Origin: Trichoplax adhaerens
Lineage: Eukaryota; Animalia; Placozoa
Assembly (NCBI RefSeq): GCF_000150275.1
Contig: NW_002060946.1
Coordinates: 1,879,454-1,943,453, forward strand
Direction of reading: 5' to 3'
Length of the DNA: 64,000 nucleotides
Shown: positions 7,293-49,700 of the stretch, in pieces
How positions within the stretch are numbered: the first letter of the stretch is position 1
Layout: every line of letters starts with the position of its first letter
Program-made: the position numbers and the translations under genes
Notes under the pieces: generated by a model
Seen by the model: only the letters and a program-made list of their open reading frames with translations
Databases searched by the model: none
What the model was told of the DNA's origin: nothing

Positions 7293-10200
7293 AACTTTAA
7301 TGGGTGCAATATACGTACTTTTCTTCAGTATAAATCATATATTATTACATAATATATATTAATAGATAAACGTACGAGAATTAGCGAGATCGTTATTCAT
7401 AATCGCGAGCATTGACTACTTCAATCTAAGTAAAATGTCTTTGACGTATACGATTTTAGATATTGCTTCATTTACGATGGACCATGTTAAGTAGGAAATG
7501 TTGTACATAGCGGAACGTAAATTCTGTTATTTTCCATCTAGGACTCTAAGCCTATTTATAATTAAAATGATCCAATCAGATACAGTGTCTAGTATATAGA
7601 GGAATATATACCAGCATAGCAAATGATGTGCTTGTATTTGCATCGTAAAGTGCAAGAGTGAAAACATGTACTGGTTCAAGAAAAAGTTAAAATTTTCATA
7701 AGGAGGCAATCTGACTATGGCTAAATTAGTATATCAGGGGCTTTAAAAAATCCACAGTATCCTTGGATATCGCATTGTCGGCATGAGGATATCGTATATA
7801 CTAGCTTGTGACCATTTCTTAAAATAATGTACCTTAAGACTCTGACCGTACAAAACTTTTCTAAAATACAATATCTACATGCGGCATAGACACAGGTTAC
7901 TTTAATCAAAATCTTATTTGTGAGCAGCGCAGTTACTTTAAGTACGGTCTTTGATATCATTTACTACAGTAATAAAGCACATTAAAGCAGCCATAATCGG
8001 TACCTATACGTAATTATCAACTTGTTCCTTGGTGGTTAACAAAATTACCGAACGAAGGTCGCTTTACAGAGTAATAACTACCGCAACTGCAAGAATTTAA
8101 TTACTGTGCAGTCATAATTACATGATGTTGTCTTTCCTATTTTTAGACACTCGAATGCGACATCTTGTAAATTAGTATATGGCTAATGTTAAAATATTTC
8201 TCACGATCTGTCCAAAATCCATCCAAAATGTCGGTATCAAAAGACACATCAATAGTACTGTATACGTATGGTAATGCACTGAATAAATGATAGACAGGTT
8301 ATTTTCCCTTTTGCAGCACAGACCAAAAAGTTTTATAAATTAATGCAACTATACGGTCTAGAAGTCCATGGACATTAAATTATCACTACAGATAATTGCA
8401 TAACTTCCTAATCGACATCTATAGGTCTATAGAATCTTTCATCAGTCGTCTTTTACCACCCGCCAAACACAATTGAGCGTAAACCAACACACTGGATTTT
8501 CGCGATCATAAAGCTAACTACTGCTTATTAATCAAGTTGTCAATTTTGTTATTACTGTACAAAATAATGCAGTATAAATTACACTATACTTGAACGGGTA
8601 TTCATACTTTTTACGCTATTAAGTTAAGTAGAAAGCCCCTTACATCGCTCGCCTAAAAACCTCAGGAAGTTATCATACTATTGTATATGGTCAATGTAGT
8701 CCCCGCCTTTTTAGTTCTTTCAATTTCTATCCGGCCCTAATGGGAGGGGTATGGTTAAAATTCGTTGAAATTGAAATTTCCGCTGTCAGTTTGGTTGACG
8801 TAATGATTGATTTAAAAAAATACAAAATGCGTAATCGTACAAGTATATTAATAATCATGAAGAAAACTTGCGATGACTAGATCTCAGTCAAAGTTGCTAT
8901 CAACATTGGCAAATAAATACGAGTATGGGCGACGCTAATGGCTATTGCACCGCATCTTATAGTATCCAATAATTGAATTCTTGGTCAGTCAATATATCTT
9001 AGGCAAATTCGTTATACTCAATTTAAGCAGAGATATTCTGTACGTGCGTGTATCCACTCAGTTTAATACAGTAAAAAGCAACATAACGAAAATAGAAATT
9101 ACTCCTTTATAAGCTATTGAATCACTAGATCACTGTATCTAAGTCAAAAAATTTCAACCAATACGTACAGTAAGGAAGTCATTCAGCTCTGCCATGTACA
9201 GTATTAAGCTTTACATCGTTTTAAGGGAGCTATTGAAATAAAAGATTGAAGTTTATTTTGATTCAGATTGAAAGGTCTCTTGTGTAGATAAATATTAGCT
9301 GTTTAAAATTTCAATTATAAGGCTAAATTACAGGAATTCTTCATTGCCAGCCATCATCACCCTAATGTTATTTTAATTTTGCCCGGTTAATTTATTAATG
9401 ATGATGTAATGGTTAAATTACTCAACGTTTCCTGAAATACTTTTGTTTACAAATATTGTAAGATTACAGAGTGCTATAGCTGTATAATTTTGCATACAGA
9501 TATCTGAGCAAACTCATGCTTTGGCGAATCGTCATAATAAAATTATATTAAATTACTCACAAATCCAATTTAGGGTATTACATTGGCTATCAGTAGTGCG
9601 GTTACAGCAATGGATGCCCGTAAATTATGAAATTTTCATGAGACCTTATATAATATATACAGATTATCTTAAGGACTAGTCCAAATCCGTGCATCTCAAA
9701 TAGCTTTAGAAATGTTTTACCATTTGCTACCGATTAGTCATTTACCGGTCATCACTATTACATTAATTCTGTGCTATGTGCTTCTTTCGGCTGTATTGAA
9801 ATCTTTTTCCAATGCATATTGAATTGATTTTCTAGTTCTTACTCTATCTGCTGCGTATTATTCAGCACCTAAAAAGCTGAAGACTGGCAGTTGACTATGA
9901 GAGCCATCTCGTTGGACTGGATTACCATTTTACCGCCCATCAAGAATACTTTTAATATAAAAGTTAGGAAAATAGTGTAGATTGTAATACTATGATTAGC
10001 GCAATAGTCCTAGATTTGAATCATCCATCGTATCTAGCAAAGAAATCCGTTTAGTAAAGCCCGGCTCATGTCATTTAGCCGACAACACAAATGTGACATA
10101 CTGCCATCGGCAAAGTCAATATCAGCAGGCTTTGATCATAATCAAATTCATTGTACAATATATTGAGCATATCCATAAAATGATAGCAAAGGTATCCTGC

Positions 10201-11581
10201 GTTTACACAGCATCGATTCGAAAATAAGCCAATAAACTATTGTATGATACAATACAGGGCCGCTTCCTGACACACTTCCGCAATACTCTATAGGGCCACA
10301 CTAGCGACTGTAAATAAATCTGCAATGGTCCATAATATATAATAGGTGGCCAAATCAATCTTTGCTCAAATTATTAGTTCTAAGTCTTTTTTGTATGCTA
10401 GTACTTCGCTATTGTTTCATGCATGTATTTACTAAATCTGCTTTTTTGAAATTTCGTTTCTATCTTTCGTGACAAGTAAAAGAGTCACAAAGTAACGGAG
10501 AAGAAATGTCAATCAATTGAAGAAATAGGGTGCAATCTTGTGTTAAAGTTGTATTTCACGATGAAAATGACAATCGTTATCAAAGGAAATAATCAGCCAC
10601 TACTATTAGACTTGTCACTATCTTGGAGATTCGTTAAAATGATCCAATTACAGTTTATAATCTACGATCTACTTAAGGTCCCCTTGCCTCGCGGGAAAAT
10701 GAATCGTGATCGTATCATAAAAGATGACTGCCGCAATCATATTATTGACTCTTTCAGTGCTAATTTTCTTGGTTACCCTGCCAACTGTCGTAGATTGATA
10801 GCCAATTATCATACAGTACTGAAATAAACATGTCAAGTAGATCTGTTAACACCCTACCCAATGTTTCTCGTCTTAATTAATTATTATTCAATAGAACGAA
10901 GGTCACTATTGATCACCAAGTTCAAATTTATTACTGTAAATTTAATTTTAATTATTTTTGTGTTTTTATTCTCTCCATCTGTTATCCTTCATCATTTTCT
11001 TTCATTGTTATACTTTAGCTACGGTAAAAGCAGAAAGATAATAATTGTTTATTATCTAGTGTCCTACCAGTCGTCATCGTCAAATGTTAGTCGATAGTAA
11101 TTCATCTATTGCAAAGGTAAATATCCGAAATATTGTCGTTAATGTAAGCAAATTACGAAGCCCTTGCAATGTTTTCCCATTTCGTAGATGTTGATATACT
11201 AATTCACTACTGTCATATGTATTAAAATACTTGTATCTGGTAAAATAACATCAAATATCAACATAATGCATCCTTCTGTATTCAATAGATAAGCCACCGT
11301 CCAAAGATAAATTCTCATATATACTTACAAGGTGCGGTTTATTGAGTCAAATTTATGCCCCCCAAAATACCTGTCATCCATTTTTATCGCCAGCTAGCAA
11401 CGCTAAATTCAATATCTTCGTCGATCTGCATCTTGCACCCATGTTGCTAGATGAAAAGCATCGAGGGTTAAATTAACACGGTATACGTTCATAGCTTGTA
11501 TCGTATACCGTTTCAAGCTTTACTGCGAAAGAGTAAGAAAGTTATCAACGTTCAATTCACAATATTAACAATACTTTGACT

Positions 11582-11836
11582 ATGCAAGGGGCAAATATTC
11601 ATCTACATTTTCATCATGGTTTTAATGATGACTGTTACGGTAGCGAAGATGATGATTATCAGGTTAATAGATGGAATGAAATTGGTCAAAATTTACAACA
11701 ACTAGCTGATCAATTTGATTTGCAGACAAGGAAAAATTCTTCTTCTTGCTGGAGTAAAAGAATAGTTCGGATGGTTTTACTTCTTGGGATTACCTTAATA
11801 ATATTTGTCTTGGCTTGGATCTACGCCTTTCATTGA
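11582..11836 (+). CDS. Candidate BH3-only protein A (84 aa) with C-terminal transmembrane anchor
   Basis: ATG at 11582 (the ORF-track TTG start is two codons upstream). Acidic N-terminus, BH3-like motif IGQNLQQLADQF at 11681-11716 (compare BMF IARKLQCIADQF), then basic residues and a hydrophobic tail VLLLGITLIIFVLAWIYAFH. GTAAGT donor at 11872, 35 nt after the stop. Confidence 0.75.
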   Translation: MQGANIHLHFHHGFNDDCYGSEDDDYQVNRWNEIGQNLQQLADQFDLQTRKNSSSCWSKRIVRMVLLLGITLIIFVLAWIYAFH

Positions 11837-14663
11837 GGATTAATGATTCACTATAGTTGCGATTGACTATGGTAAGTCGAGCATCCAGTAATCTGCACTT
11901 AAATAGCAAACTAGCATAGTACCTCTATGTTACACTAGAACAAAATTGATGCCATCATTAATTATCAGTATTTCTTTACCCATTCAAGAAGATAATATAT
12001 TGTAAAAATGAATTTTATAGTTTAAATTAAATGTGATACCAAAACATTTTAATGCAGTCAAGTTTTATAGTTTTCGTCCTCATCAACACATTTATTTGAT
12101 GAGTTATAATCCGCGTTTAAATCAAACTAATTAACGAAATTATTAAAACTTTTGCATTCGTAGACCATTCTTATATCATGATCACAGCCTGTATAAAAAG
12201 AGAAAAATAATACCGCCTACGCTACGTGTTCTTCTCCTTACAAATTGTAATTGTTACCGCGATATTGCTTGGGTTGTTTAGTTACGTTAACAAAAGATGG
12301 CTACTAAATTACAGTATACGCCTATGCGAATTAAAGTACTGTAACACTTTTCCAAAAGATAGGAAAATTTCAGCTCCGCATAGATGTTATAGTCTCTCAC
12401 TTCGCATAATTTAGTATCTACAATAATAAATCTACTTATCATCAAGTTATACACCGTAAATTGGATTACTCTATGGTAAATTAATACTAGCAAATCGATC
12501 AAATACATGCGAATCTGTCGATAATAATAATGTTGCAATTGAAATTTCTCGGCATATCATAATGAAATCAAGTTAATCCTTCCTATTTTTTTCTGTATCA
12601 TCAAAGGACTGAATCACTTCCATGGATTTCATTTGATACCAATAGAATTACCGATATTAAGGTACCGAATTTCAGTGAAACTCGCTGACAAAAGCATTTT
12701 AACTGGATACGTCATTTCGACAACTTCAAGCGGTTACTGTATGAAGATCTAATTACTAAGAAGTTTGTAGAAACAAACATATTGCTGCTATATTGTAAAT
12801 GAACTATAACAATATGCAACCAATACTTATCGGTATTGATCGCGTAGCTGCAAGATCCCCTACTGTATTGATTGCTTAAAAGCGTGTTAAAATAGCATAA
12901 ATTAAGTAACTGATTGCTGCAGTATTTTATTATACTGTATATACACGAGATGCTTTAAAGAAAAGGCGCCGGTTCGATATCAAGCAACAAGTTTGGTGTC
13001 AAATTGAGTAGGCTTACAGGCAGGGCAGCTTGGAAAACATTTGTTATGAGGCGGTGCGAATTGTAAGATATGAATAGCATGATGTCATGCATAAAAAGAG
13101 GCTTTTTCTCGCATTTTAAGACTAGAGTTAGTACAAAACTGCCTGTTCATAGAGTACCTTTTTACAGGAAATCAGTAATACTAAATCGTATATTGATTTT
13201 GTTGATAGAAGTGCTGCTACATTTACAAAAACTGATCATAAACTACAAGGAACTGTCTAACTATTTTTACTTCGTTCTAATTCCTGACATACTCATAGAT
13301 TCTAAATAATAATTGATTTAATGCTTGGAGCTGTTAGAGTATGATATATCATTACAGATTGATACAGTTTACGTATTTTATGACAACATCAGAGGATAAC
13401 TACGTATCTCGATTAATGTTGTCACTCGTTTTAAACAAAGAAATATCTATGCGTGCACATTCATAGTACTATTTTAATTTTTAATCTACTATGAAGTAAA
13501 GCCTTGCGATCTTAAAGGATAGCACGGTCTTGACTTTTTTTGTGCTTCTTTGCTAGTTAGATGTCAGTACCTTTGTTGGCTCAAGTGAACAGTAGCCAAT
13601 CGAATAGTTAGGCAATTACTTTTGCCTATGCACTCAAGTACTTTAGTACTGGTACGTAATATTGATGCGCTTTCCGCTGAACATAGCTAAATTTGAATAT
13701 GTTATAATAATTTAAGCTACATGTATTATCATAAATCATAAATTGTAAAGTTACATTGCTTTTGTATAAGATTACAGGATAAACACTTATGTTATGGTAT
13801 TAAATTTTTATTATCCGAATAACAATAAAAATTTAAGAAAATTTTCTATATACATAACTCATTTGCGAAATTGTAAGTTGTAATATATGACATAGCTAGC
13901 CTATTTATCCAAAATATATCTAATCCTATACCTTATGTTGCATGCCTAAAATCATTTATTGATGTACCATACCGTATATGTTTTTGCGATTTTTATTTAC
14001 TTATGGCTTTATGAGCTATGACTCACCGAAGTGCGCCATTATGTAAAACTCGCATGACTGCAACTCTTTGGCAATCAAACTTCTCCTGGATTCCCTTCAA
14101 GTACACTAGTATTGATAACGTACAGTATCTGAATATTATGCCGAGTCATCTTGCATATTCTTAACTGATGTAATGTAGGTTAAAACTTACTGGTACCATT
14201 ATGAAAGTTCATATAAAACATTAAGGGTTCTAAGTTAATGATTTGAAGCATAATTAACTATTTCTAACGTATACCGCAACAGTACAAACAGTATAGTGCT
14301 AAAAACAGAATGAATTTATATGCATCTACAGTACACCGTATCAAAAGAGATTCTATTTTCACGCACTGTTAGTAGACATTTGTTGTATAAATTTGAGTGT
14401 GGATATTTATGAAATTGCACATTAGGATGCAGTGTTACCACCAGCGATGACTGTCTACTGGCAATCCATAATATTTACAACTATACAAAGAATGCTATCG
14501 GGCTTACTCCTATAAAATGTAACATATCTACCATAACATACAGGAATGATATTTAGTTGACAGCGAACTCTACAGTACTTCAATATAGATTTGTCACCTT
14601 ATGCTAATGTCAGGTAGAAATAAGCTGGCACTAAGATAGACGGTAATATAATTACATATTTAA

Positions 14664-20466: not shown

Positions 20467-20682
20467 ATGGATCAAGATACAACCAACGAGATCGATGAAC
20501 AAGTTTGGCCTGATATAGGGGCTGATCTAAGGCTCCATGCAGACGAATTTGACAATCAATATCGCCGAAACTCCAATCTTGAAATGGTCATTGCCACATT
20601 TGATGGTATAGTTCAATCAGTGCTATTTCATCAAGTTCTCCGGATCGTACTTCACATCACCGGCAATTATCATCGCCTCTAG
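20467..20682 (+). CDS. Candidate BH3-only protein B (71 aa), PUMA/BIM-like
   Basis: EQVWPDIGADLRLHADEFDNQYRR resembles PUMA EEQWAREIGAQLRRMADDLNAQYERR. Amphipathic C-terminus LFHQVLRIVLHI. 12/23 identity with protein A across W..IG..L...AD.FD.Q.R.NS. TATAAAA at ~20142 and GTAAGT donor at 20712, 29 nt after the stop. Confidence 0.75.
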   Translation: MDQDTTNEIDEQVWPDIGADLRLHADEFDNQYRRNSNLEMVIATFDGIVQSVLFHQVLRIVLHITGNYHRL

Positions 20683-23600
20683 TCTTGTCGGATTCATCTC
20701 TGAAAATTGCGGTAAGTACACTAGTAATGCATACATCAATTGATTGCCTACCATCAACAAAATGAAGGCCAAACCTTTCATCAACTTTCTATTATACCAT
20801 GACTTGTTTTGCAGCATAAGTCCCCCGACAAATGGAGGCTTTTACACGTCCAATTTTCAATCAGTTTCTGACCCTTTCAACATTCCTTTATTTCATTTTA
20901 TTTCACTCTATCTTAATATCGACAATACGCGCGGTCAATCGACCACTTCCATACGCATTCTAAAAAATATCGTCACTGAAATACTTGAAATCAAGAACGC
21001 CGGCCGTATACGTTATAAGGTCTTTGATCTAGTACATTACTGTACGTGCATAGGGCTTACCCCACCAAATAGAGAAGTACTGTACAAGTATACGGTGTCT
21101 TATTGATTGGATGATACGCTTATATACAGTACTTGAATTAGTTGATCTGTTTTCATCGCAGTTGAACTTTGGAGTTACTATAAATTACCAACAAGTAACT
21201 GACTGACAATAATCATGCACCAGTATTGAAGCACCTTTGTTGTGTATTGGCATTTCCGACTGGGTTTTTAATATTTGTCCAATGGTGGGCTTATGACGGT
21301 AACGACAGAGCTAATTTACTTAACAATGTACAAGTGTATTAATTCCTTGTCATGAAACGATCAGTCATGCAATAGCTCTTGTCGACTACCGTCGGCTGCT
21401 AAAAGAAAATCTTTCTAGTATTTCATCATTCAGCCTGAATGATTTCGTAGCAGGCGAAGATAAATGTTGAAGCGCTGCACACATCAACTTCAATTAATAA
21501 TATTAAATAAACTTCATTAATTCAAAATCAATTGCATATAATAGTTCGTGTCGCATGCTTGATACCCCTAAATATACATTTAGTAGCTTAGCCAGAAATC
21601 TTGCTTCAAACCACACTTTAAAACAACATCATTTTGCTGAATTAATACTTACTAAAGAGAAATATCCAGAGTAGCAACTCCGAACTGTTCTTCAAAGTCG
21701 AAATACCTTTGCTGGAGTTGCCCTATGGAATAGTGACGGTCATTGCATAGGGCCCTGGAAGTAAATTTAGATAGTTTAAATACAGTGCATTCTGACAGTA
21801 TTGCACTCATAAGAGGAATATCATTGCCTAACTACATAGACCACCAATGACCAAGATTCATAATAGGATTGGACTGTATATATTATAGCTTGTAATTTAC
21901 CGAAATTATATTTTATTGTATTATTGTCGGAAAAATAAGACCTGTGCTTTCTTGATCACTATAGACAAGCCGGAAACCATCCTCAATACATGAGGAAAAT
22001 GATAATGGCCCAAAAGGATATCGGAGAACGGACTCGTAAATGCCAACAAGTATGCTTTTCAACTGCATTCTTTATCAATTGGTAACTATTGCTAAGATTG
22101 ACAGTGTGATGAAAGCAGAAACTAGGAGAAAATTGGTGGAGAAGTGAATTTCAAAGATCACTTGTTAACCGTGTTGCTTAAAAAGTTGCTAGTTACTTAC
22201 TAATTATTCCGTATTTAATCCACCCACACGTTTTGTTTTATTACGCGTGCAAAATGCGTTACAATGAGTTGTTCAGTTTCTTGGTGACTTGCTGATATTT
22301 CTATTTTGAAAACGATGCATTAGGAAAGCTCTGTTGGTTTAACTGCATTGATTTATTTCGAAGTTGACAAAGGTACTGAAACGTAAACGATCATTACCTG
22401 TTGAACTGATTAAACTGCAGTCTCAAATCGTTAAACCCAAACGACTGGAAATGGTTCAGTCGTTGTAAGGGCATATATACGAACTGTGGTGTTGTTGCTA
22501 GATGTGATTTTGAAACACAAGTAAATCCCAATAGCTAGTACACACTGTGCTATTTTGTCCTGTCTAGTCTAATGCGAAATTTTTATCGGAGGACAGTATG
22601 TGCATACATTATATGACATTATATACATATATATACATATATATATATACATACTGCATATAGGCATTGATTGCAAAATAAGCTACAAGGTGTTACTCGA
22701 TGAAGGTTTTGTGTGCTCACCATTCTGTAACAGCCAGGGTGTGATGGTTGATATTGAAGGATATTTTTATGTTTTTGTAATCTCTGTATATTTGCCATGT
22801 GCAATGTACAGTTACTTACAGTAGGCTGTCCTACAGCACTACGGCATATTGATTATTGTCAATGGTATTATTTTTTTATTTTAAATTCGAGACCCTACTG
22901 TGTACATCGTACTTTGTTAATTAAATTGTATTTAATTTTTTATCGTTTTATTAGTCATAAAGATTTTACAGGCGATATTTCGTATCACTAGATGTAAATC
23001 ACGATTGGATGGAACTCCAAATCATTTTTTTAAGTTACTGATTCTTGTTTTATTCATGTACGATTTGTATTTTATTTCTAGCTCAACATACAAATACCAT
23101 TACTGTAGTATTGCAGTATGGGTTTATCTAAATGTAACGTAAAGACTTTGGAAATATAAACAATGATTAATAAAATATGCTTATGATCATGTCTCTCTGA
23201 ATTTACTTCTTGTGGTTATTTGTAACCACCAACATGCAGTACGTGTATATCCCCTCCAAATAGACAAAAATGAGAAAATACTGTATCCTATTTACGGCTG
23301 TCACTTCCATAGGTATACTGTTCCACCTAGGTGATTAACAGACGATTCTCTTTTACTGAATATCATTACTATCAATAATAATGACTCGCCTTTGCCCCCA
23401 TAGCAGTGTAATCAAGAGATTTAATTTTGTAATAAAAACATTATAATTAGCAATTGTTTCCTTCCGCACGAAACGCATAGAGCGTATCGGTTAGTATACC
23501 TTGTAAATTATGAAATCAAGTGAATGTTTCAATTAATCTTATTATATGATCAATTAATAAATCATGACACCCAGGCGTCGATTGCTGCTGAAAAGCCACA

Positions 23601-26600
23601 TTCAACCTTGATTGTTTAGTATCTTACAAAATACGACCATTTTACTTTGTTAACTTGTTTCATAAAACTGATGCAAATGCGTCAAGTCAATTTTAGTGCA
23701 ATAAATTTAATAATTATTTAGGTATGCAGTATCCTTGCTACTTTGTAAAGGATCCCATTAATCCAGTAGTAATCCTTGTGTTTATTTCTCGCTGCTGTGC
23801 ATACTCTGTCAGGTGTTCGCATTTGACATGATAGACGCAATCAGCTCTATAGACTATATAGTGTCCTACGGATAATGGCGGTATAATTGCGGACAATACG
23901 ACTGCCACAAGTCGGTAATAACCTTTTTTTTTTTTTACTATGACGTCAGCGCATCGAGAGATGGCGAAAAAAAAAAAATGTCCAAGAAAAAAAATTGGTG
24001 TTGTCATCGATTAAAAAAAAGTTTTCCAACAGTTACTATTGTAGATTCCTACGATATCGAGCGTTATCATGACAAGATTTACGTGTTTATAGCCAGTTTA
24101 ATCTATTTTTTACATGTCTAGAAAGATTTTTGAATCGTCGAACTAGAGAGTTCATCAAGATTTGAAGGATTTTATTTTTTTGTTTTTTATCGCTATGGAC
24201 GGTCTCGCTGGCGTTGACAGACAGACAAAAAAACTTTTGGAAAAAAATCTGCCAATTTTTTTTCTCGGATTATTTTTCATTTCGGAATTCATGATGATGA
24301 GATGATACGAATAACACGACCAATCAGTGGAGAATTTATTAGACAATAACATTAAAAAACTTGTCCCCTGTGTTTTTTTGATATAATTTGATACATTAAA
24401 CTTAAAAGGCTTTATTGTGTTATTTAATTCTATAATACTGTATAGAAAAGAAAAAAAATCACAGCAATAGGCATTCAATCAGTGAAAAGACTGTAAACAG
24501 TACATAGGTATACATTAAGGACACCTTCGCTATACAACTCTTAATATTAGCGGTAAACACGCCATTGACGTTTGGCAATTTCCATTGTCCAAAAAGTTTT
24601 TTTGCAAAAGTTCAATATCTTGTGAATCCCCTCTTTTTTAATAGGTAACCAATTGTTAATTAAATGTTTTGTTAGTGTCTTCAAACAAAGAAAGGGCAAT
24701 ATTCTTCCTGATCACCTTAGCTGTAGCTCGCTCGGTTGTCAACTTTACTTTGCTTACAAACAATAATCTACGACTGATTGATTGATGAACTTAATTGTGC
24801 AAAGAAATATACAGATCATCTGAAAGCGAAATGACCGCCTATTTCCACAACTACGAAATAATTAATGGAAATGAATCCAGGTTGTCTGAATGTTTGACTT
24901 ACTTAATGCTCATTCAATAATTTATCATACGCCACTCTAATCTCGACAAGAAGCTATTTTTTGGGAATGAGATTTTACCCTACAGTTATCATTATTGCCA
25001 TGAACTTAGGCAGCGTTTAGTGTAGCAATTGTTATACACTGTATTGCAAACGTGTAATCATGCTTATAACTTTTACCAGATGGTTCTGTAAAGTTAGATA
25101 GACTAAAGATTTAATGACTACACGAAAAGATAAAAACTCCTTGGCTGCAGTGTCTTTATTTAATTTGCATGCAAAAACGCAGTTGAAACGTTTAAACGTT
25201 TCAATGTTTACTGTAGGCGGAGGTTCCTCAAGGCCATTCATGTTCTTCAGTTAATCATGAAATCAAGATTCTCTAAGTACATACGGCACAAATAAATTAA
25301 TACATGATTGACATGGCGTTTGAAGAGATTTATAAGCTACTCGATCTAATTCCTTATCTAATTCTTATCATGATGGGGCTAGATATCACACTAACCCTTC
25401 TCTCTGCCATGTATCAACCTCTAATTTTAACGGACTTGGTAATTATAATATAAAAACACTTTTTATCAGTCGATGGGAATCATAACCTGTTTAAATTAAA
25501 CAGATTCCATGTATGGCACAAGATAATAAATCACTTTACTTGGTGAAGATACAGATCTCTATGTCCGATCATGACAGTCTGCATACTATCCCCTACAATT
25601 CTAGTGCTGTATACAATAAAGAAAACAAAATGATAAAATAAAAATTAACATTTTTAATAATTATTATTTTTTTCTTTAAATCAATCGGACTCCTCCCTCT
25701 TGTTGATGAAAATTGAATATGATAGACGCATATCAAATAATGTCAACTTATCATCGACCCACCTCTTCGTCCTTATTTTCTTTCTCTTATAACATTGATC
25801 ATCAATCCTAGCGCCCTAAGTACATTCTAATATCAAGACCTCCTTCACTAATAATTATAATGACAACCTCATGATAACTTGTCTTTACAAGTGCAATGCT
25901 ACCACTAGCCATTGGTATATTAAGTGTTATGTATCCTACGGTAAAAAGCTTGTCGTTAATTTTGCAAATGTAATTACGAAAATCGAATAATGATGCCAGG
26001 GCTAAATATTTTAAGAGACTACACAGTTTATTATGGTCGAACAATATAGCGATTAGTTTTACAACTCTAACTACTTACTCAAGTATAATTGAGTTTGTGT
26101 AAAAATTATTTTATCGTTACCCTTTAATATTAAAACCGTAACCTTGTGGCAATTCCCTTCCTAAATTAGAGATTTTACTCTGCTTTGCATATAATTCTAG
26201 AGGTGATATTATGTATGAGTAGAATGGATACAACGGTATCGGTGTGAATCTAGGCTAATTTGAAACATAATAATCGTATGTTTATGCTATCGATGGACTG
26301 TATACGTACAGTATGTGTTCATATACTGTCCATAAAATAAAATTCAATAAATTGACGAATCCCCTATTATCTTGATCGGGTCGATATTTTTGTTGAGCTT
26401 TGCTACTTTTTTTTCGTAGGTCTTTAAGTCATCAATGAGGGCATGGTAGTACAGCTAATATACACATTGTATGTAGATATACTGCTACTGATTTTTTACA
26501 AGTTGCCAATTAACACGTTAATTAAACTGTCGCGTATTAGACTAGTAATGACGTAATGAAATTTTTTTTATTTATTTTTTTTAATATCCTTTTTTATACT

Positions 26601-37417: not shown

Positions 37418-39740
37418 GGGCAGCAGTGTTGATATATAGCGCCGTGGGTTCCCTTCGGTGTTCATTTTGCTTGAAAGAACATCAGGACTCGACCAATTTT
37501 TCGTGTATCGGTCATCTCCAAATTATAACTTACAAGCTGCAAATCAATTTAAACCACCTTGGTTCGTATATTTTTGTTCCAATTAGAACTAAAAAAAATT
37601 GGGTTTTATCCTAAAGTGCAACATTCAATCGGTATCCGCATTACTGTAGTTGGTCTACTTCGTCGAAACGCCTTCAACCACCTGAGAGTCGCATTGAATG
37701 GATGATGCAGATAATATACGTGCTGAAGAAAGGAGGCTATGGCACATTGACGATTTTGCCGAGAACGCTGTACCAAGAGGAAGAAATTATGCTTGGTATG
37801 ATAATCTTCCTTTAATGCGGCGATATTTACGATATTTGCTGCAAGCTTGGCAACAACTACGCTATATTTTCTTCTAGTTGATGGAAACAATTCATTTCTA
37901 TTAAACGTTGAATTGCATAGAAAAAAGGAAAACTTTAATTTTTTTTTGTCTACGTATTTTCGTGCTGTACCATGTTCTACGTGAAGTACACCGATGATCG
38001 TAGCTGGTTTTAATCTGTATAAAACGATGCTGTCTATACTCTTTCTTTCCTTTTTTTCCATATTCTGCTTTGTGCTGGATACACTTAGCAAGATATGACT
38101 TTTTTGATCAATTTCGTATGAATTATCAGGTTATAAAGTTTCAATGCTCTGTAGTTAAATACTACTGTATGCGACAGTGTGATATCCAGTGGTCAATACA
38201 GTATTCAGATGGAATCGCCGTAGGCGGTAGTGCCGGTGAAAATTTGTTGTAGTCAACTTGGTAGTATGATGCTGTAGTATCGCTGATTTCAGCCATATCA
38301 AGTTATCTTGTAATTCTTTCCACTATTATCCATCACCTGTTTGTCATCAATCGCTTGGATCCGCTGTTAATTTCCGAAAAAGTAGCAGAGTACAGTACAA
38401 TATTATTATTATGAATGACCTCTGTAAACAGTGTGTGGACGGACGTACCATGTATTGCGCATGTTGGTCAGCTGCAAAGACTTTCACAGTATGCTGTCTT
38501 ACTCTGAAAAGCGTAAGCGGTACCGATTCCACCTGTAGAGGTAACAAACTGAATTAACCTCCTTGTTATCCTACAAACTAGAGTAAACTCTATACAGTAT
38601 TGTTATTCTTTTTTAGTTCGTTAGTCGGTTAGATAGTCAACTAGTTTTTCAATTGATATTTAATTGTAAAGACTATAATCTTGGGTGCCAAGATTCCTTC
38701 AGTAATAAATGATAGTAAATCTCTGACTATCTCGTCTACATCATCTGTGACGCTATAATTATACCATAGTATTCGGTTGTTGGAACTGAATTATTTGGTG
38801 ATATAGCTAATCTCGCCTCTTTAAGTTAGTAAGTGGCGTTCTACGCAAGGATTGGCGTGTGTAGACTACTTTGTTACTAGTGGTGTGTGACAAGTATCTA
38901 TATACAGATGTATACAGTACTGTACAGTACATATCGATAAACTACAAGCCGACGGACGCGTACGCAATCGAACATGAATTTCAATTGTAACCGCAATGTT
39001 AACTAGTTTTTAATTTTCTTCTTGTCATCGAGGTACAAATTTGTTACTCGATATGTTATGCTTGATTGATTATATATTGTTATTGTTGTACAGTATATAT
39101 AGTTAGTAATAGATTAAATACGATATCTTAACCATAAAGGCATAAATAAAGGAAACACTATACTGTATATGTACGTATACTGTACTGTATGATGATTGTA
39201 TGGTAGTACTTGTAATACAGTAGGTGATAACATTGTAAAAGGCGGACTGATAAGCTACTAATTGTAGTGCGAAGTATAAACTGTAATCGTATCGAGGTGT
39301 AACCTCGTGTAGCTGTAAATACCGATCAACTAATAATAAAATGCGGTTATCAATCTTACTCACGGAGTGAACTTATTATTGAAGAACATAACAGTTATTA
39401 CATGTAAAGTCAATGAACAGACTGTATTTGAAGATATTTTGCTTCATGAAAGGATAGACTAGAGAAATGGCGATGCAGTAATATTTGATATTTTGGTAAT
39501 GATGGAGTACAATCCGTATATTATGACGTCACAAAATGATGACCATTTTTCAATCAAGTATAGAATCCATGATCGCGCTAATTAACTTACTGTCATAGTT
39601 AATTTACTTTCATCGATCGACAAATTTTTCAAATCGTGTAAGACGTATTACTATTCATAAAATATATCTTGATAGCGTAATTTAAATTTAAATTTGTATT
39701 GATCAATTAACTCTATTAATAGCCCTACATAGGAACTTTT
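37418..39740 (+). repeat. Segmental duplication copy 1 (direct repeat of 43215-45170) carrying the BH3-dead paralog
   Basis: Long near-identical blocks with copy 2. Segments unique to copy 1 at ~38580-38897 and ~39085-39395. Confidence 0.95.
37698..37877 (+). CDS. Duplicate of protein C with mutated BH3 (59 aa); BH3-dead paralog or incipient pseudogene
   Basis: Manual translation: MDDADNIRAEERRLWHIDDFAENAVPRGRNYAWYDNLPLMRRYLRYLLQAWQQLRYIFF*. The ORF is intact, but AGRRLRRIGD has become EERRLWHIDD. Confidence 0.6.
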   Translation: MDDADNIRAEERRLWHIDDFAENAVPRGRNYAWYDNLPLMRRYLRYLLQAWQQLRYIFF

Positions 39741-43214: not shown

Positions 43215-45170
43215 GGGCAGCAGTGTTGATATTTATAGTTAGCATTGTGATATATAGCACCGTGGGTTCCCTTCGGTGTTCATTTTGCTTGAAAAAACAT
43301 CACCACTCAACCTTTTTTTCCTGTCTCGGTCGTCTCCAAATTATAACTTACAAGCTGCAAATCAATTTAAACCACCTTGGTTCGTGTATTTTTGTTCCAA
43401 TTAGAGCTAAAAAAATTGGGTTTTATCCTAAAGTACAACATTCAATCGGTATCCGCATTACTGTAGTTGGTCTACTTCGTCGAAACGCCTTCAACCACCT
43501 GAGTGTCGCATTGAATGGACGATGCAGATAATATACGTGCTGCCGGAAGGAGGCTACGGCGCATTGGCGATTTTGCCGAGAATGAAGCACCAAGAGAAAG
43601 AAATTATGCTTGGTATGATAATCTTTTAATGCGGCGACATTTACGATATTTGCTGCAAGCTTGGCAACAACTACGCTATATTTTCTTCTAGTTGATGGAA
43701 ACAATTCATTTCTATTAAACGTTGAATTGCATAGAAAAAAAGGAAAACTCATGGATGACCGGTGACACTAGTTGGATAGTGTACGCACTTGGTATCTTGA
43801 GAAAAAAAAAATGAACTTCTTAATTAATTTAATATATCTTACACGTACATAGCTAAACGATTTACTGTGCTTCGTGAATTCTAATATATTATAGTAAGCT
43901 AAACATAGTCTAGCTTGCATCCAAGTGAAAGTGAATATTTTCTTAACTTCAACTTTTATTTTTTTTTGTCTACGTATTTTCGTGCTGTACCATGTTCTAC
44001 GTGAAGTACACCGATGATCGTAACTGGTTTTAATCTGTGTAAAACGATGCTGTCTATACTTTCTTCCCTTTTTTTTTTATATTCTGCTTTGTGCTGGATA
44101 CACTTAGCAAGATATGACTTTTTTGATCAATTTCGTATGAATTAACAGGTTATAAAGTTTCAATGCTCTATAGTTCAATACTACTGTATGCGACAGTGTG
44201 ATATCCAGTGGTCAATACAGTATTCAGATGGAATCGCCGTAGGCGGTAGTGCCGGTGAAAATTTGTTGTAGTCAACTTGGTAGTATGATGCTGTAGTATC
44301 GCTGATTTCAGCCATATCAAGTTATCTTGTAATTCTTTCCACTATTATCCATCACCTGTTTGTCATCAATCGCTTGGATCCGCTGTTAATTTCCGAAAAA
44401 GTAGCAGAGTACAGTACAATATTATTATTATGAATGACCTCTGTAAACAGTGTGTGGACGGACGTACCATGTATTGCGCATGTTGGTCAGCTGCAAAGAC
44501 TTTCACAGTATGCTGTCTTACTCTGAAAAGCGTAAGCGGTACCGATTCCACCTGTAGAGGTAACAAACTGAATTAACCTCCTTGTTGTCCTACAAACTAC
44601 AGTATATACAGATGTATACAGTACTGTACACTGTACAGTACATATCGATAAACTACAAGCCGACGGACGCGTACGCAATCGAACATGAATTTCAATTGTA
44701 ACCGCAATGTTAACTTGTTTTTAATTTTCTTCTTGTCATCGAGGTACAAATTTGTTACTCGATATGTTATGCTTGATTGATTATATTGTTATTACATGTA
44801 AAGTCAATGAATAGACTGTATTTGAAGATATTTTGCTTCATGAAATGATAGACTAGAGAAATGGCGATGCAATAATATTTGATATTTTGGTAATGATGGA
44901 GTACAGTCTGTATATTATGACGTCACAAAATGATCATTTTTCAATCAAGTATAGAATCCATGATCGCGCTAATTAACTTAATTAACTTACTGTCATAGTT
45001 AATTTACTTTCTTTGATCGACAAATTTTTCAAATCGATCGACTAATTTTCAAATCGTGTAAGACGTATTACTATTCATAAAATATATCTTGATAACGTAA
45101 TTTAAATTTAAATTTGTATTGATCAATTAACTCTATCAATAGCCCTACGGGACGTATCATAGGAACTTTT
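43215..45170 (+). repeat. Segmental duplication copy 2 carrying intact BH3 gene C
   Basis: Direct repeat of 37418-39740. Segment unique to copy 2 at ~43749-43955. Confidence 0.95.
43515..43691 (+). CDS. Candidate BH3-only protein C (58 aa), absent from the ORF track
   Basis: Manual translation: MDDADNIRAAGRRLRRIGDFAENEAPRERNYAWYDNLLMRRHLRYLLQAWQQLRYIFF*. The core LRRIGD is identical to BIM. The basic/hydrophobic C-terminus resembles the BIM tail (RLLRYIVRLVW). In-frame TGA immediately before the ATG; TATATAG at ~43251. Confidence 0.72.
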   Translation: MDDADNIRAAGRRLRRIGDFAENEAPRERNYAWYDNLLMRRHLRYLLQAWQQLRYIFF

Positions 45171-46708: not shown

Positions 46709-49700
46709 CTAGTCGCTGCATTCGGGTGAACTTGATCGTATATTGTATTCTTCTTCGGTCGTAGTACTTGCTGCCGGAGATGAAACTTTAGTTGGTGGTA
46801 ATGGCTTAAATGGATTTAAACTGCGTACAGATTTTCCACCGCGCGTGTTTACTTCTTGAGATTTCGTTAACAGTGGTGGCATAAATGAAGACTGTAAATT
46901 GTTATCATTAACGTCAGGTTGACTTGAAGTTATCACAGATTGTGATAAACTTCGAGTCGTTGATGGCGTTACTGAGCTCATTCGTGATAAACTTTCGCTT
47001 TCTTCCGTTGATGAATCTACGTTATTCCTATTATTACTTTGCCAAAAAGGACTACTCAAAAACTGATTTCTGCTTTTATTGGACTGAATTGAAGAGGGTG
47101 TAGGGATTTCGTCTCTGGAGGACATGATCGAGCTTGAAGCTGCCGATTCACTACGACTAGGAGTATCTTGGTAATCTTCATTAGTGCCAAATTTGGATAA
47201 TTCAGAATACTTACTATCCCAAGCAGGTTTAGTTCGGCGCGATAACGATGGCAGACTTGAAGCAGAGTTAGGGCGAAAAACTGTTTTATCAAATTTATCA
47301 TTGCGAGATTTTTCTTCGCTACTCATCCTCCTATCCGAAATACTTTCACTAATACTGTTTCTCGCTTGAGTTTGAAATTGAGTATCAGGTTGAATCGATC
47401 GAGTTCTTGTCATTTCTTCGGAGGACATTGGTCTGTTTCGATTTGATTTTCGTTGTGATCGAGCCGAGTGACTCCTGTCGGTAGCTCTATTAGATAGATT
47501 ATCTGAGACTATATCATTTTTTGTCGGAGTTAAGGTTCGAGAAGATAGTTCAGTATCATTGTAACTGGATGCAATGCTTGACCTTGCTTGAGTTACATCT
47601 TCAATAATTATTGAATCTTCTCGCTGTACCTCTCTATTGTTAATTTCATGATCACTTTGACTAGAGATAGCATCCTCTTCTTGAGATACTAAATGCGCGG
47701 GATTTGGACTATTAATGGCTAATCTATATTTTTCCATTAACTCCTCTAATCTTTCATCTGAAATTTCAGTTCTGTCGGATTCCAAATCAGTACCAGTTCG
47801 AGAAGTGATTGGAGTACTGATGGAGGATCTGCATTGTTCAAGTAACTCTTGCAATCTGCTCTCATCGACGCTTTGGGTATCATCCTATTTTCATCAAGGA
47901 TTGATGCCATTATTCAATAGTAATCATGATGTGGCTACATGAAGAATCTTAAAAATGTAAGTGAATGAGATATAATATTAATTTACCTCTTCATCATATT
48001 TCATTTTATGCAATTGTTGTTCAATGGTCTTAAGGCGATGATTTAAATCTCGTTGAAATTTCGTTTCAAATAAGCTATACTCTCCTAGACCTAGGTAGAT
48101 GACAAGTGAAATAGGTTCATACGAGTGTTTCCCTAAATATCTCAAAAACCTTTCAGTAGGCAGGATATATGTCTATGATCAGTACCATAGTTATCGATAT
48201 CGTTTTCATCAGCTTGCCATGCTATTATTTCATCTTTAACGAGACTCTATAGGATTAATTGTCAACATATTGGAAATACAAAATGTTAAAAGTTGCTATT
48301 GTACTGCAAAATTGCTCATCTAATCGCCAATAGTTGTAAAAATTTATTTCTTACATCGATTTTAGTTACACTAGTAATATTTTCAGTCATATCTTCATTT
48401 GGAACCATAGTTAAACTTTCGAATTTATCTGCCGGCATGATAGATTTCAATTTTCTAATTGTCATACAAGTAAGAATACAAACTTTACTGCAAGAAATAA
48501 ATAATCAGAAGCAAATCGTGACTACTAGAAAATTAAAATTTCTCAGTCGTACGTATCAATGCTATCTAAGATCTCTTTTTCTCGCTTTTCCGGAAGAAAT
48601 CCATTTGAAAGATTTTTAGAACTTGCAATATGGGTGTTTGTCTGGTTGATATGGATTTAGTATCCGCATTAATACCAATAAAGTCAAATAGGCATCGAAA
48701 CAAGACTGTGATTATTGAATATAATCTAGTACCGTCTCAGTTTCGTCTTGATTTTCATCCGCTTCAAGCAAGAGCTGCTCAATTCTCTTTTTTTCTTCAT
48801 CTGTCATCGTAACTATATTGGCCGCATCTGCTGCGAGCTATGTCAGCCAATAAAACTCTTGTGTTACTTATTACAATTACGTTAATAGCAGGGATCACTC
48901 AAGAAATTTTTTTCTCCCATTCCCATACACGGGAAGGAATTTCTTGAGTAGTCCCTATTAACAGATAGAGAATTATGTTATATCTCAATCTAATATGATT
49001 ATATTACAATACCTCGATATTTCTTCTAATATAGTTTTTATTTTTAGAGTCCGTTTTTTCACTTTTTTGGTTACTATGGTGCCTTTTATCGTTTTTTCCC
49101 TTTTGCTTTCTGCTTTGTTTAATCTTTCTATGTATTCGAGTCCTTGTCATTTCTGAATGATTTTCAGTTCGAACATTGGATTTTTTGCTACTCGATATCT
49201 CTGTAGCTGCCAATAAATGGTCTCAGATATATATTTGATTGATAAAACAACAAACAGAAACATCAATATAGAAATTTACCTTGTTCTTCATCTGATATAT
49301 CGGAAAGGTTGTAATTGACATCTAGATTACTTTCAATTAGTCCCGGCGGTTGAGTAGCAAAGAGAGGTGAAAATGTTCCAGAATAAGCTTCTATTTCCTC
49401 ATCGTCACTGAAAGCTATGCAAAAATCGAACATCACTACAAAGAAACATCTTCAATGCTTATAACTATAAATTAACCTCTTACAGTTACGAGTAAATACT
49501 TTATAGAATTATATCAGATTACTTGATAAATCGGGCGCAGGGCCAATAGCGTTAATGTGATTTTTAGATAGTAAAGCAATTTCTTTTCCTTCTCGTTCGA
49601 GTTGCCTTTGCTGCTCTATTAACTGTTGTGACCATTGAGATTCTAACACTAGCCGTTTCTTCTTGACTTCTTTTTCTTTCTATTTATTGATTCATCATCA

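Follow-up and report, generated by a model that had tools for sequence, protein, structure and literature searches.

Results

Location and layout of gene A

The window (the whole 64,000 nt stretch of Trichoplax adhaerens contig NW_002060946.1 that was analyzed) is AT-rich (27–38% GC) and contains few long ORFs and no tRNA genes, while its first 21.9 kb are 99.2% identical to contig NOWV01000046.1 of Trichoplax sp. H2. Gene A lies on the forward strand at 11582..11836 as a complete single-exon CDS of 84 aa plus stop (ATG at 11582, TGA at 11834–11836) and corresponds to the last exon of the H2 gene model TrispH2_004895, the “hypothetical protein” product of which (P0001, 99% identical) was the sole match to the gene A ORF in a word search.

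All of the features of gene A are, naturally, encoded on the same strand. A His cluster (HLHFHH, residues 7–12) and an acidic/Asn-rich tract (residues 15–25), both pointed out by an earlier sequence-only reading of the locus and both indeed present in the ORF, make up an N-terminal part (11600..11656) that is predicted to be disordered. There follows a BH3-like amphipathic helix, W31–Q48 (11672..11725), that harbors a 13-residue BH3 core, I34–D46 (11681–11719; IGQNLQQLADQFD), in which the octapeptide LQQLADQF occupies residues 38–45. Alignments place a basic post-BH3 R-K-N-S stretch at residues 50–53 (11729..11740), which reads R-R-N-S in the paralog B described below and is only partly conserved in the orthologs of A (KKDRPS or MRDRPS); possibly, it is a basophilic kinase site. 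The protein ends with a transmembrane tail anchor, I61–F83 (11762..11830), after which only H84 remains.

The same sequence-only reading had seen in this C-terminus a hydrophobic helix preceded by K/R residues and had called it a typical mitochondrial or ER tail anchor. The helix itself stands: the hydrophobic segment spans the 23 residues 61–83, is preceded by a basic SKR..R stretch and reaches a best 19-residue Kyte-Doolittle mean of 2.70 (1.68–1.82 in the orthologs, which have kept the tail), and an AlphaFold2 (AF2) helix at residues 57–83 coincides with it. The assignment to particular membranes fared worse, since the charges beside the transmembrane helix are not conserved in the orthologs and give no indication of a target membrane. 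With a hydrophilic, His/Asp-rich N-terminus, no N-terminal signal sequence and a single C-terminal transmembrane helix, the protein nevertheless has, by its sequence, the make-up that defines tail-anchored proteins.

The chance expectation for such a layout was estimated from 150 dinucleotide shuffles of the window, in which a strict BH3 regular expression was sought both by itself and together with an anchor at the C-terminal end of the open frame that contains it. The expression was found 0.36 times per shuffled window, and the combination with the anchor 0.0067 times, which amounts to ~11 occurrences per 105.6-Mb genome (1414 contigs). The motif and the tail alone are, therefore, not significant genome-wide, and it is conservation, in two divergent orthologs and a tandem paralog, that raises gene A above chance.

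Conservation of gene A and its gene model

When the 84 residues were searched with phmmer against 1.84 billion representative proteins, only two matches were returned, namely, the H2 protein and P0004, an 83-aa protein with 35% identity to A (E=1.5e-8, spanning residues 5–83) that is encoded by a 525-nt metagenome scaffold (L005). With a profile search, P0005 (84 aa, 36% identity), encoded by contig L007 of run SRR30664517, was recovered as well, and a reciprocal six-frame genome search with P0005 returned gene A alone (E=1.2e-13). The same run also holds an ortholog of gene B on a contig (L003) that is collinear with positions 20501–25315 of the window over six conserved blocks of 72–83% identity, and the source of run SRR30664517 is, therefore, a divergent placozoan. 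Neither phmmer nor a profile word search revealed any relatives outside placozoan-like DNA, and six-frame searches of the whole genome with A, the family profile and P0005 yielded A and B, with no further paralogs. Like the window itself, all of the loci retrieved are placozoan-like, and none of the contigs resembled human DNA.

All three A orthologs share the same ATG, a length of 83–84 codons and the same stop position, and A aligns to P0005 on L007 without a single gap column over the CDS, in contrast to the 3′ flank, which has indels. Nucleotide identity between the window and L007 is 53% for the N-terminal codons, peaks for the CDS at the BH3 codons (76%) and is 63% for the tail codons. 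The dN/dS ratios (Nei-Gojobori, Fisher test), estimated at a dS of about 0.9–1.0 among the A orthologs, were 0.34 for P0004 vs. P0005 (p=0.006), 0.44 for A vs. P0005 (p=0.005) and 0.52 for A vs. P0004 (p=0.023). Gene A is a single-copy, conserved gene under purifying selection.

In the A lineage, invariant residues are few N-terminally to the helix (M1, H9 and F14), accumulate in the helix itself (W31, I34, G35, L38, Q40, A42, D43, Q44, F45 and Q48), continue after it with S55 and W57 and reappear in the tail (F75, L77, A78, W79, I80, Y81 and F83). The His cluster has been kept in composition only, with all three orthologs being His-rich and then D/E/N-rich.

Conservation extends past the stop codon into a 3′ UTR stub on the forward strand (11837..11876; 78% identity to L007) that ends in a GGTAAGT splice-donor consensus (11870–11876), beyond which the identity of the window to L007 is 53%. 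This donor, ~35 nt past the A stop, is present in all three species, and a GGTAAGT is likewise found 35–40 nt past the stop of B (about 20709–20715), which suggests an intron in the 3′ UTR of both genes that may affect the stability of their mRNAs.

The H2 annotation offers a different gene model, in which small upstream exons are spliced to an acceptor at 11587–11588 to give a 117-aa product; placed by reference to that annotation, the extra N-terminal exons lie at about 11060–11128 and 11289–11331, and the gene starts near 8228. This 117-aa model was rejected, as its acceptor is not shared by the orthologs, whereas the ATG is. Reading upstream from the ATG of scaffold L005, a stop codon is reached in frame after 12 codons, and the intervening stretch offers no AG; the ORF of A contains no other Met before residue 64. 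The 84-aa ORF was taken as the complete CDS on account of these four observations (the conserved ATG, the non-conserved H2 acceptor, the upstream stop of L005 and the lack of another early Met), and the worry raised in the sequence-only reading, that the ORF might be a single exon of some bigger and unrelated protein, is not borne out by the conserved ATG, the acceptor and the L005 stop. The expression evidence for A consists of the H2 gene model only, the N-terminus of which disagrees with the orthologs.

Tandem paralog B

A second gene of the same family, B, lies downstream on the forward strand at 20467..20682 (71 aa) and corresponds to TrispH2_004896, the next annotated H2 gene after TrispH2_004895. 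It carries a 25-residue module ahead of a C-terminus of moderate hydrophobicity, and the module common to A and B can be written as W-x-x-I-G-x-x-L-x-x-x-A-D-x-F-D-x-Q-x-R-[KR]-N-S. BLASTP of A against B gave 28 bits (E=1e-6, 12/24 identical), and an hhalign comparison of the two lineages gave a probability of 93% (E=2.7e-7) over 25 columns, with W, G, L, D, F and Q of the helix being common to both.

The orthologs of B (P0002 and P0006) retain the entire unspliced 71-aa ORF, including the hydrophobic C-terminus, and the dN/dS of the B lineage is 0.235 (p=1.5e-5). The H2 model of B, for its part, removes a 76-nt intron (20606–20681) and runs through the GGTAAGT donor to an exon at ~21965–22036, the start of which is covered by a block (21937–21996) that is 82.5% identical in the other species. 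Going by these sequences, B may exist as two isoforms, of which only one has the membrane tail, or the H2 version may be a mis-model.

BH3 character of the conserved helix

A BH3 motif can be described by a 13-residue rule: a hydrophobic residue (h1), a small residue, two arbitrary residues, h2 (Leu), two arbitrary residues, h3, a small residue, Asp, one arbitrary residue, h4 and a polar cap. Gene A follows it throughout (h1 I34, small G35, h2 L38, h3 L41, small A42, D43, h4 F45 and cap D46), and the three orthologs show either no change or a conservative replacement (L/I at h3) at the positions of the rule. In BH3 motifs, conservation is high for the Leu and absolute for the Asp that comes four residues later (PMC7022251). 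The helix is amphipathic in the whole A lineage, with hydrophobic moments of 0.44–0.54, and the value of the A segment (0.44) exceeds those of 98.4% of shuffles.

AF2, run on a six-sequence alignment, modeled A as two helices, 24–51 and 57–83 (the latter being the transmembrane one, with a pLDDT of 72–81), and left residues 1–23 without secondary structure at a pLDDT below 50. The low mean pLDDT of 61 is as expected for such proteins. No Pfam match to the Bcl-2 fold (PF00452) was found in A.

Profiles built from placozoan sequences only were compared with all of the 177,635 distinct PDB sequences (E<=10) as an unbiased test of what the helix resembles. With the profile of A and P0004, 11/13 matches were BH3-only peptides, among them BMF four times (best E=0.047), EGL-1, PUMA and BAD, and adding P0005 to the profile left the outcome much the same (11/14 BH3-only peptides, BMF best at a marginal E=0.037). 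The joint profile of A, B and the B ortholog retrieved PUMA at E=0.005–0.008 and then BAD, BIM and the Bcl-xL BH3, with these four making up nearly all of the 60 matches listed. A alone, or 33-residue segments, searched without a profile against the PDB (E<=10) and Pfam, gave no BH3 match. A WD40 repeat, suggested by PDB E-values down to 1e-19, was discarded as an artefact: these values are sums over 7–13 repeats of 4–6 bits each, with individual E-values above 100, and all of the repeat matches fall on one and the same 19–24-residue stretch of A.

Pfam searches at E<=10 point the same way, with BMF matching at the BH3 region of P0004 and P0005, PUMA at that of B and the BIM BH3 family at that of P0002, each as the top match or close to it, all of these BH3-only matches of the A and B families being far below the gathering scores. 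The named ESM-Atlas neighbors of A and of P0005 were PXT1, BIK, BIM, BMF and NOXA only, at low scores (0.75–0.85) that make them leads and nothing beyond that; PXT1 is a BH3-only protein as well (PMC10298792). Taken at the level of sequence, the A helix appears to be closer to BH3-only ligands and to the BH3 of the Trichoplax Bak than to anything else in the PDB. It should be kept in mind that the BH3 motif is degenerate and has known false positives (PMC9171138, PMC4611713), ApoL2 being a case in which a BH3-like domain does not go along with BH3-only behavior (PMC4611713).

Discussion

Comparison with known proteins

The parallel between LQQLADQF of A and LQCIADQF of BMF that the sequence-only reading had drawn holds, as the BMF chains in the PDB (IARKLQCIADQFH) align to the A core and are the top PDB match of the A-lineage profile; the orthologs of A read IG[QE]DLRQIADQFH. 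No similarity to BMF (PF15185) exists beyond the 13-residue core, and the gathering score of that family (27 bits) is not reached by any of the sequences (no match for A, 12.0 bits for P0004 and 13.3 bits for P0005). “BMF-like” is a label that covers the BH3 core only, and A belongs to none of the BMF, PUMA and BIM families, which it resembles in that core alone. A also lacks the (K/R)xTQT dynein-light-chain motif of BMF.

For PUMA and BIM (PF15826, PF08945), the likeness is that PUMA peptides (REIGAQLRRMADDLNAQYER) are the best match of the joint A and B profile (E=0.005), and PUMA shares with A a Trp just upstream of h1 and a Q-x-R-basic stretch past the motif; the Trp of A is, however, one residue nearer to h1, no full-length homology is detectable, and the resemblance is strongest for B. 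Since A and B are paralogs of each other, the difference between their best matches (BMF vs. PUMA) is probably no sign of orthology, but a consequence of the shared BH3 rule. In overall architecture, A resembles HRK and BIK, which are likewise short and disordered, carry a single BH3 helix and end in a transmembrane anchor, and BIK clusters rank with the closest named ESM-Atlas neighbors of A, although no alignable sequence similarity of A to either was found and the Harakiri Pfam family was not matched.

A comparison closer to home is provided by the organism itself. The genome encodes four Bcl-2-fold loci, which are the four known genes, and the BH3 stretches of two of them (L009 and L010, on contigs C1388 and C1414) match exactly the published trBak and trBax peptides, therefore confirming the identity of the assembly and of those two loci. 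The BH3 of trBak (trBcl-2L4; EIGRHLAQLGDSY) is identical to that of A (EIGQNLQQLADQF) at 7/13 positions, with G/A and Y/F replacements in addition, and the two proteins come from the same organism, in which the receptors are available. The trBak BH3 peptide binds trBcl-2L2, and the two have been crystallized together (PMC7527217). The difference is that trBak is a multi-motif protein with the Bcl-2 fold (PF00452), which A lacks.

VAMP2 and the Synaptobrevin family (PF00957) share with A the tail-anchored layout, a juxtamembrane Trp with basic residues and a weak profile similarity that covers the end of the helix and the transmembrane segment; they differ from it in that A scores below threshold and has neither a full SNARE motif nor a zero-layer residue, and in that the B lineage shows no such similarity.

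Proposed function and its rivals

The proposal of the sequence-only reading that A is a BH3-only candidate finds in silico support in the BH3 rule, the placozoan-only profiles and the conservation, and we think it reasonably probable that gene A is a genuine tail-anchored BH3-only candidate, its BH3 function being a prediction. A would then be a largely disordered, placozoan-specific initiator or sensitizer of the BH3-only type in Bcl-2-regulated apoptosis that would be inserted, after its translation, into either the outer membrane of mitochondria or the ER. Its cytosolic helix would dock with I34, L38, L41 and F45 in the groove of the pro-survival trBcl-2L1/L2, with D43 paired to the conserved arginine of that groove, and such docking would free trBax and promote mitochondrial permeabilization; alternatively, the helix might engage trBax or trBak directly. 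Paralog B would act like A, and possible points of control for A are its transcription, its R-K-N-S site, its His cluster or its 3′ UTR intron.

The most serious rival holds that A is a real, conserved, placozoan-specific tail-anchored micro-protein whose helix serves some other partner (e.g., as a membrane-organelle regulator or an oligomerization helix), the BH3 resemblance being convergent or coincidental. We consider this unlikely, albeit worth real weight: the motif is short, the PDB E-values of the A lineage are marginal and A alone finds no BH3 match there, ~11 ORFs combining motif and anchor are to be expected per genome by chance, there are precedents of BH3-like motifs without a BH3-only function (PMC4611713), and the invariant W31, Q40, Q44 and Q48 fall outside the requirements of the BH3 rule. 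Coincidence would, on the other hand, have to account for PDB profiles, Pfam and language-model neighbors, as well as two paralogous lineages, converging on BH3-only proteins with nothing else consistent emerging from the three methods, for the invariant positions being exactly h1, small, h2, small, D and h4 and for a core similar to that of the native trBak ligand.

Far less probable is that A represents a degenerate or truncated R-SNARE (brevin-like), comprising the C-terminal half of a SNARE motif with a VAMP-like W-x-K and transmembrane segment. Synaptobrevin (PF00957) is, admittedly, the best Pfam match of A (E=1.9e-4, 21.6 bits), with residues 36–83 aligning to positions 41–88 of the 89 in the profile; the family also matches P0001 (4.1e-4) and P0005 (0.0063, 16.8 bits, residues 16–81), and VAMP2 chains in the PDB are matched by A at E=0.16–0.33. 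All of these PF00957 scores are, however, under the gathering score of 26.4, and neither P0004 nor the B lineage is matched; the predicted helix of A has 28 residues vs. the ~53 of the SNARE motif, with the sequence upstream being His/Asp/Asn-rich and disordered; and the A lineage has no conserved zero-layer Arg or Gln. In the SNARE register, which is our own mapping from the offsets of the VAMP2 PDB alignments, the invariant I34, G35 and D43 lie off or against the layers, fitting the BH3 register instead, and the polar N52 occupies the would-be +8 layer.

The last possibility is that the frame is open by chance in DNA that codes for nothing, or that A is an exon, wrongly annotated, of some larger and unrelated gene. 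It can draw on the motif and anchor alone not being rare genome-wide and on the H2 annotation joining A to upstream exons in its 117-aa model, but is hardly credible and effectively refuted by the conservation data: start, length, frame and stop have been kept at the dS given above with 84 codons free of indels, dN/dS is significantly below 1, the H2 acceptor is not conserved, L005 has its in-frame stop (with no AG between it and the ATG), and no other Met precedes residue 64.

Significance for the placozoan apoptotic network

Experimental papers as well as reviews report that BH3-only genes went undetected in Trichoplax, or in placozoans at large (PMC7527217, PMC7022251, PMC8998228), and some of the ideas on early apoptosis rest partly on this absence, namely, that early Bcl-2 networks comprised multi-motif members only and that trBak acts as a sensitizer (PMC7527217, PMC7022251, PMC8998228). 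A literature search found no later report of a placozoan BH3-only gene. Gene A is, thus, a BH3-only candidate, with a predicted functional role, in a phylum from which such proteins have been reported absent, and A and B together are concrete, conserved candidates for the missing placozoan BH3-only protein. The gene is missing under the T. adhaerens name from the protein collection searched and is merely “hypothetical” in H2, which would explain why BLAST-based surveys missed it.

A bolder version of the proposal, in which A and B are the missing functional BH3-only initiators and share a common ancestral tail-anchored gene with the bilaterian BIM/BMF/PUMA/HRK, is speculative and strikes us as rather improbable. 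Were it true, the switch made up of guardians, effectors and a BH3-only trigger would predate the split of placozoans, cnidarians and bilaterians, and the proposal that trBak stands in for absent BH3-only proteins would need revision. Should A bind and kill, the origin of the BH3-only trigger would move to or before the placozoan branch, and should it fail as a BH3 protein, it would still make for a useful, well-controlled case of a conserved BH3 look-alike. A direct test could draw on reagents that are already at hand, i.e., recombinant trBcl-2L1/L2, ITC with 26-mer peptides and the BMK DKO cell assays (Popgeorgiev et al.).

Other features of the window

The longest ORF of the window (46709–47854 on the reverse strand, 381 aa) encodes a Ser-rich, low-complexity product with no Pfam match at E<=1. 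A segmental duplication (37430–39075 and 43248–44786, 92–99% identity) carries two short “LRRIGD / LWHIDD” ORFs, 37698–37877 and 43515–43691, which were considered as members of the A/B family and rejected, having no Pfam match and being missed by the family profile; both are overlapped by longer antisense ORFs. Lastly, ~260 nt past the stop of A, there is a block of 240 nt (12096–12335) that has no Rfam match, folds no better than its shuffles (z=+1.3), contains no frame that is open in both species, shows no third-position bias and occurs as a single copy. The block is 90% identical (216/240) to L007, far above the CDS of A (63%) and the flanks (35–53%), and is, judged by these properties, a conserved non-coding element.
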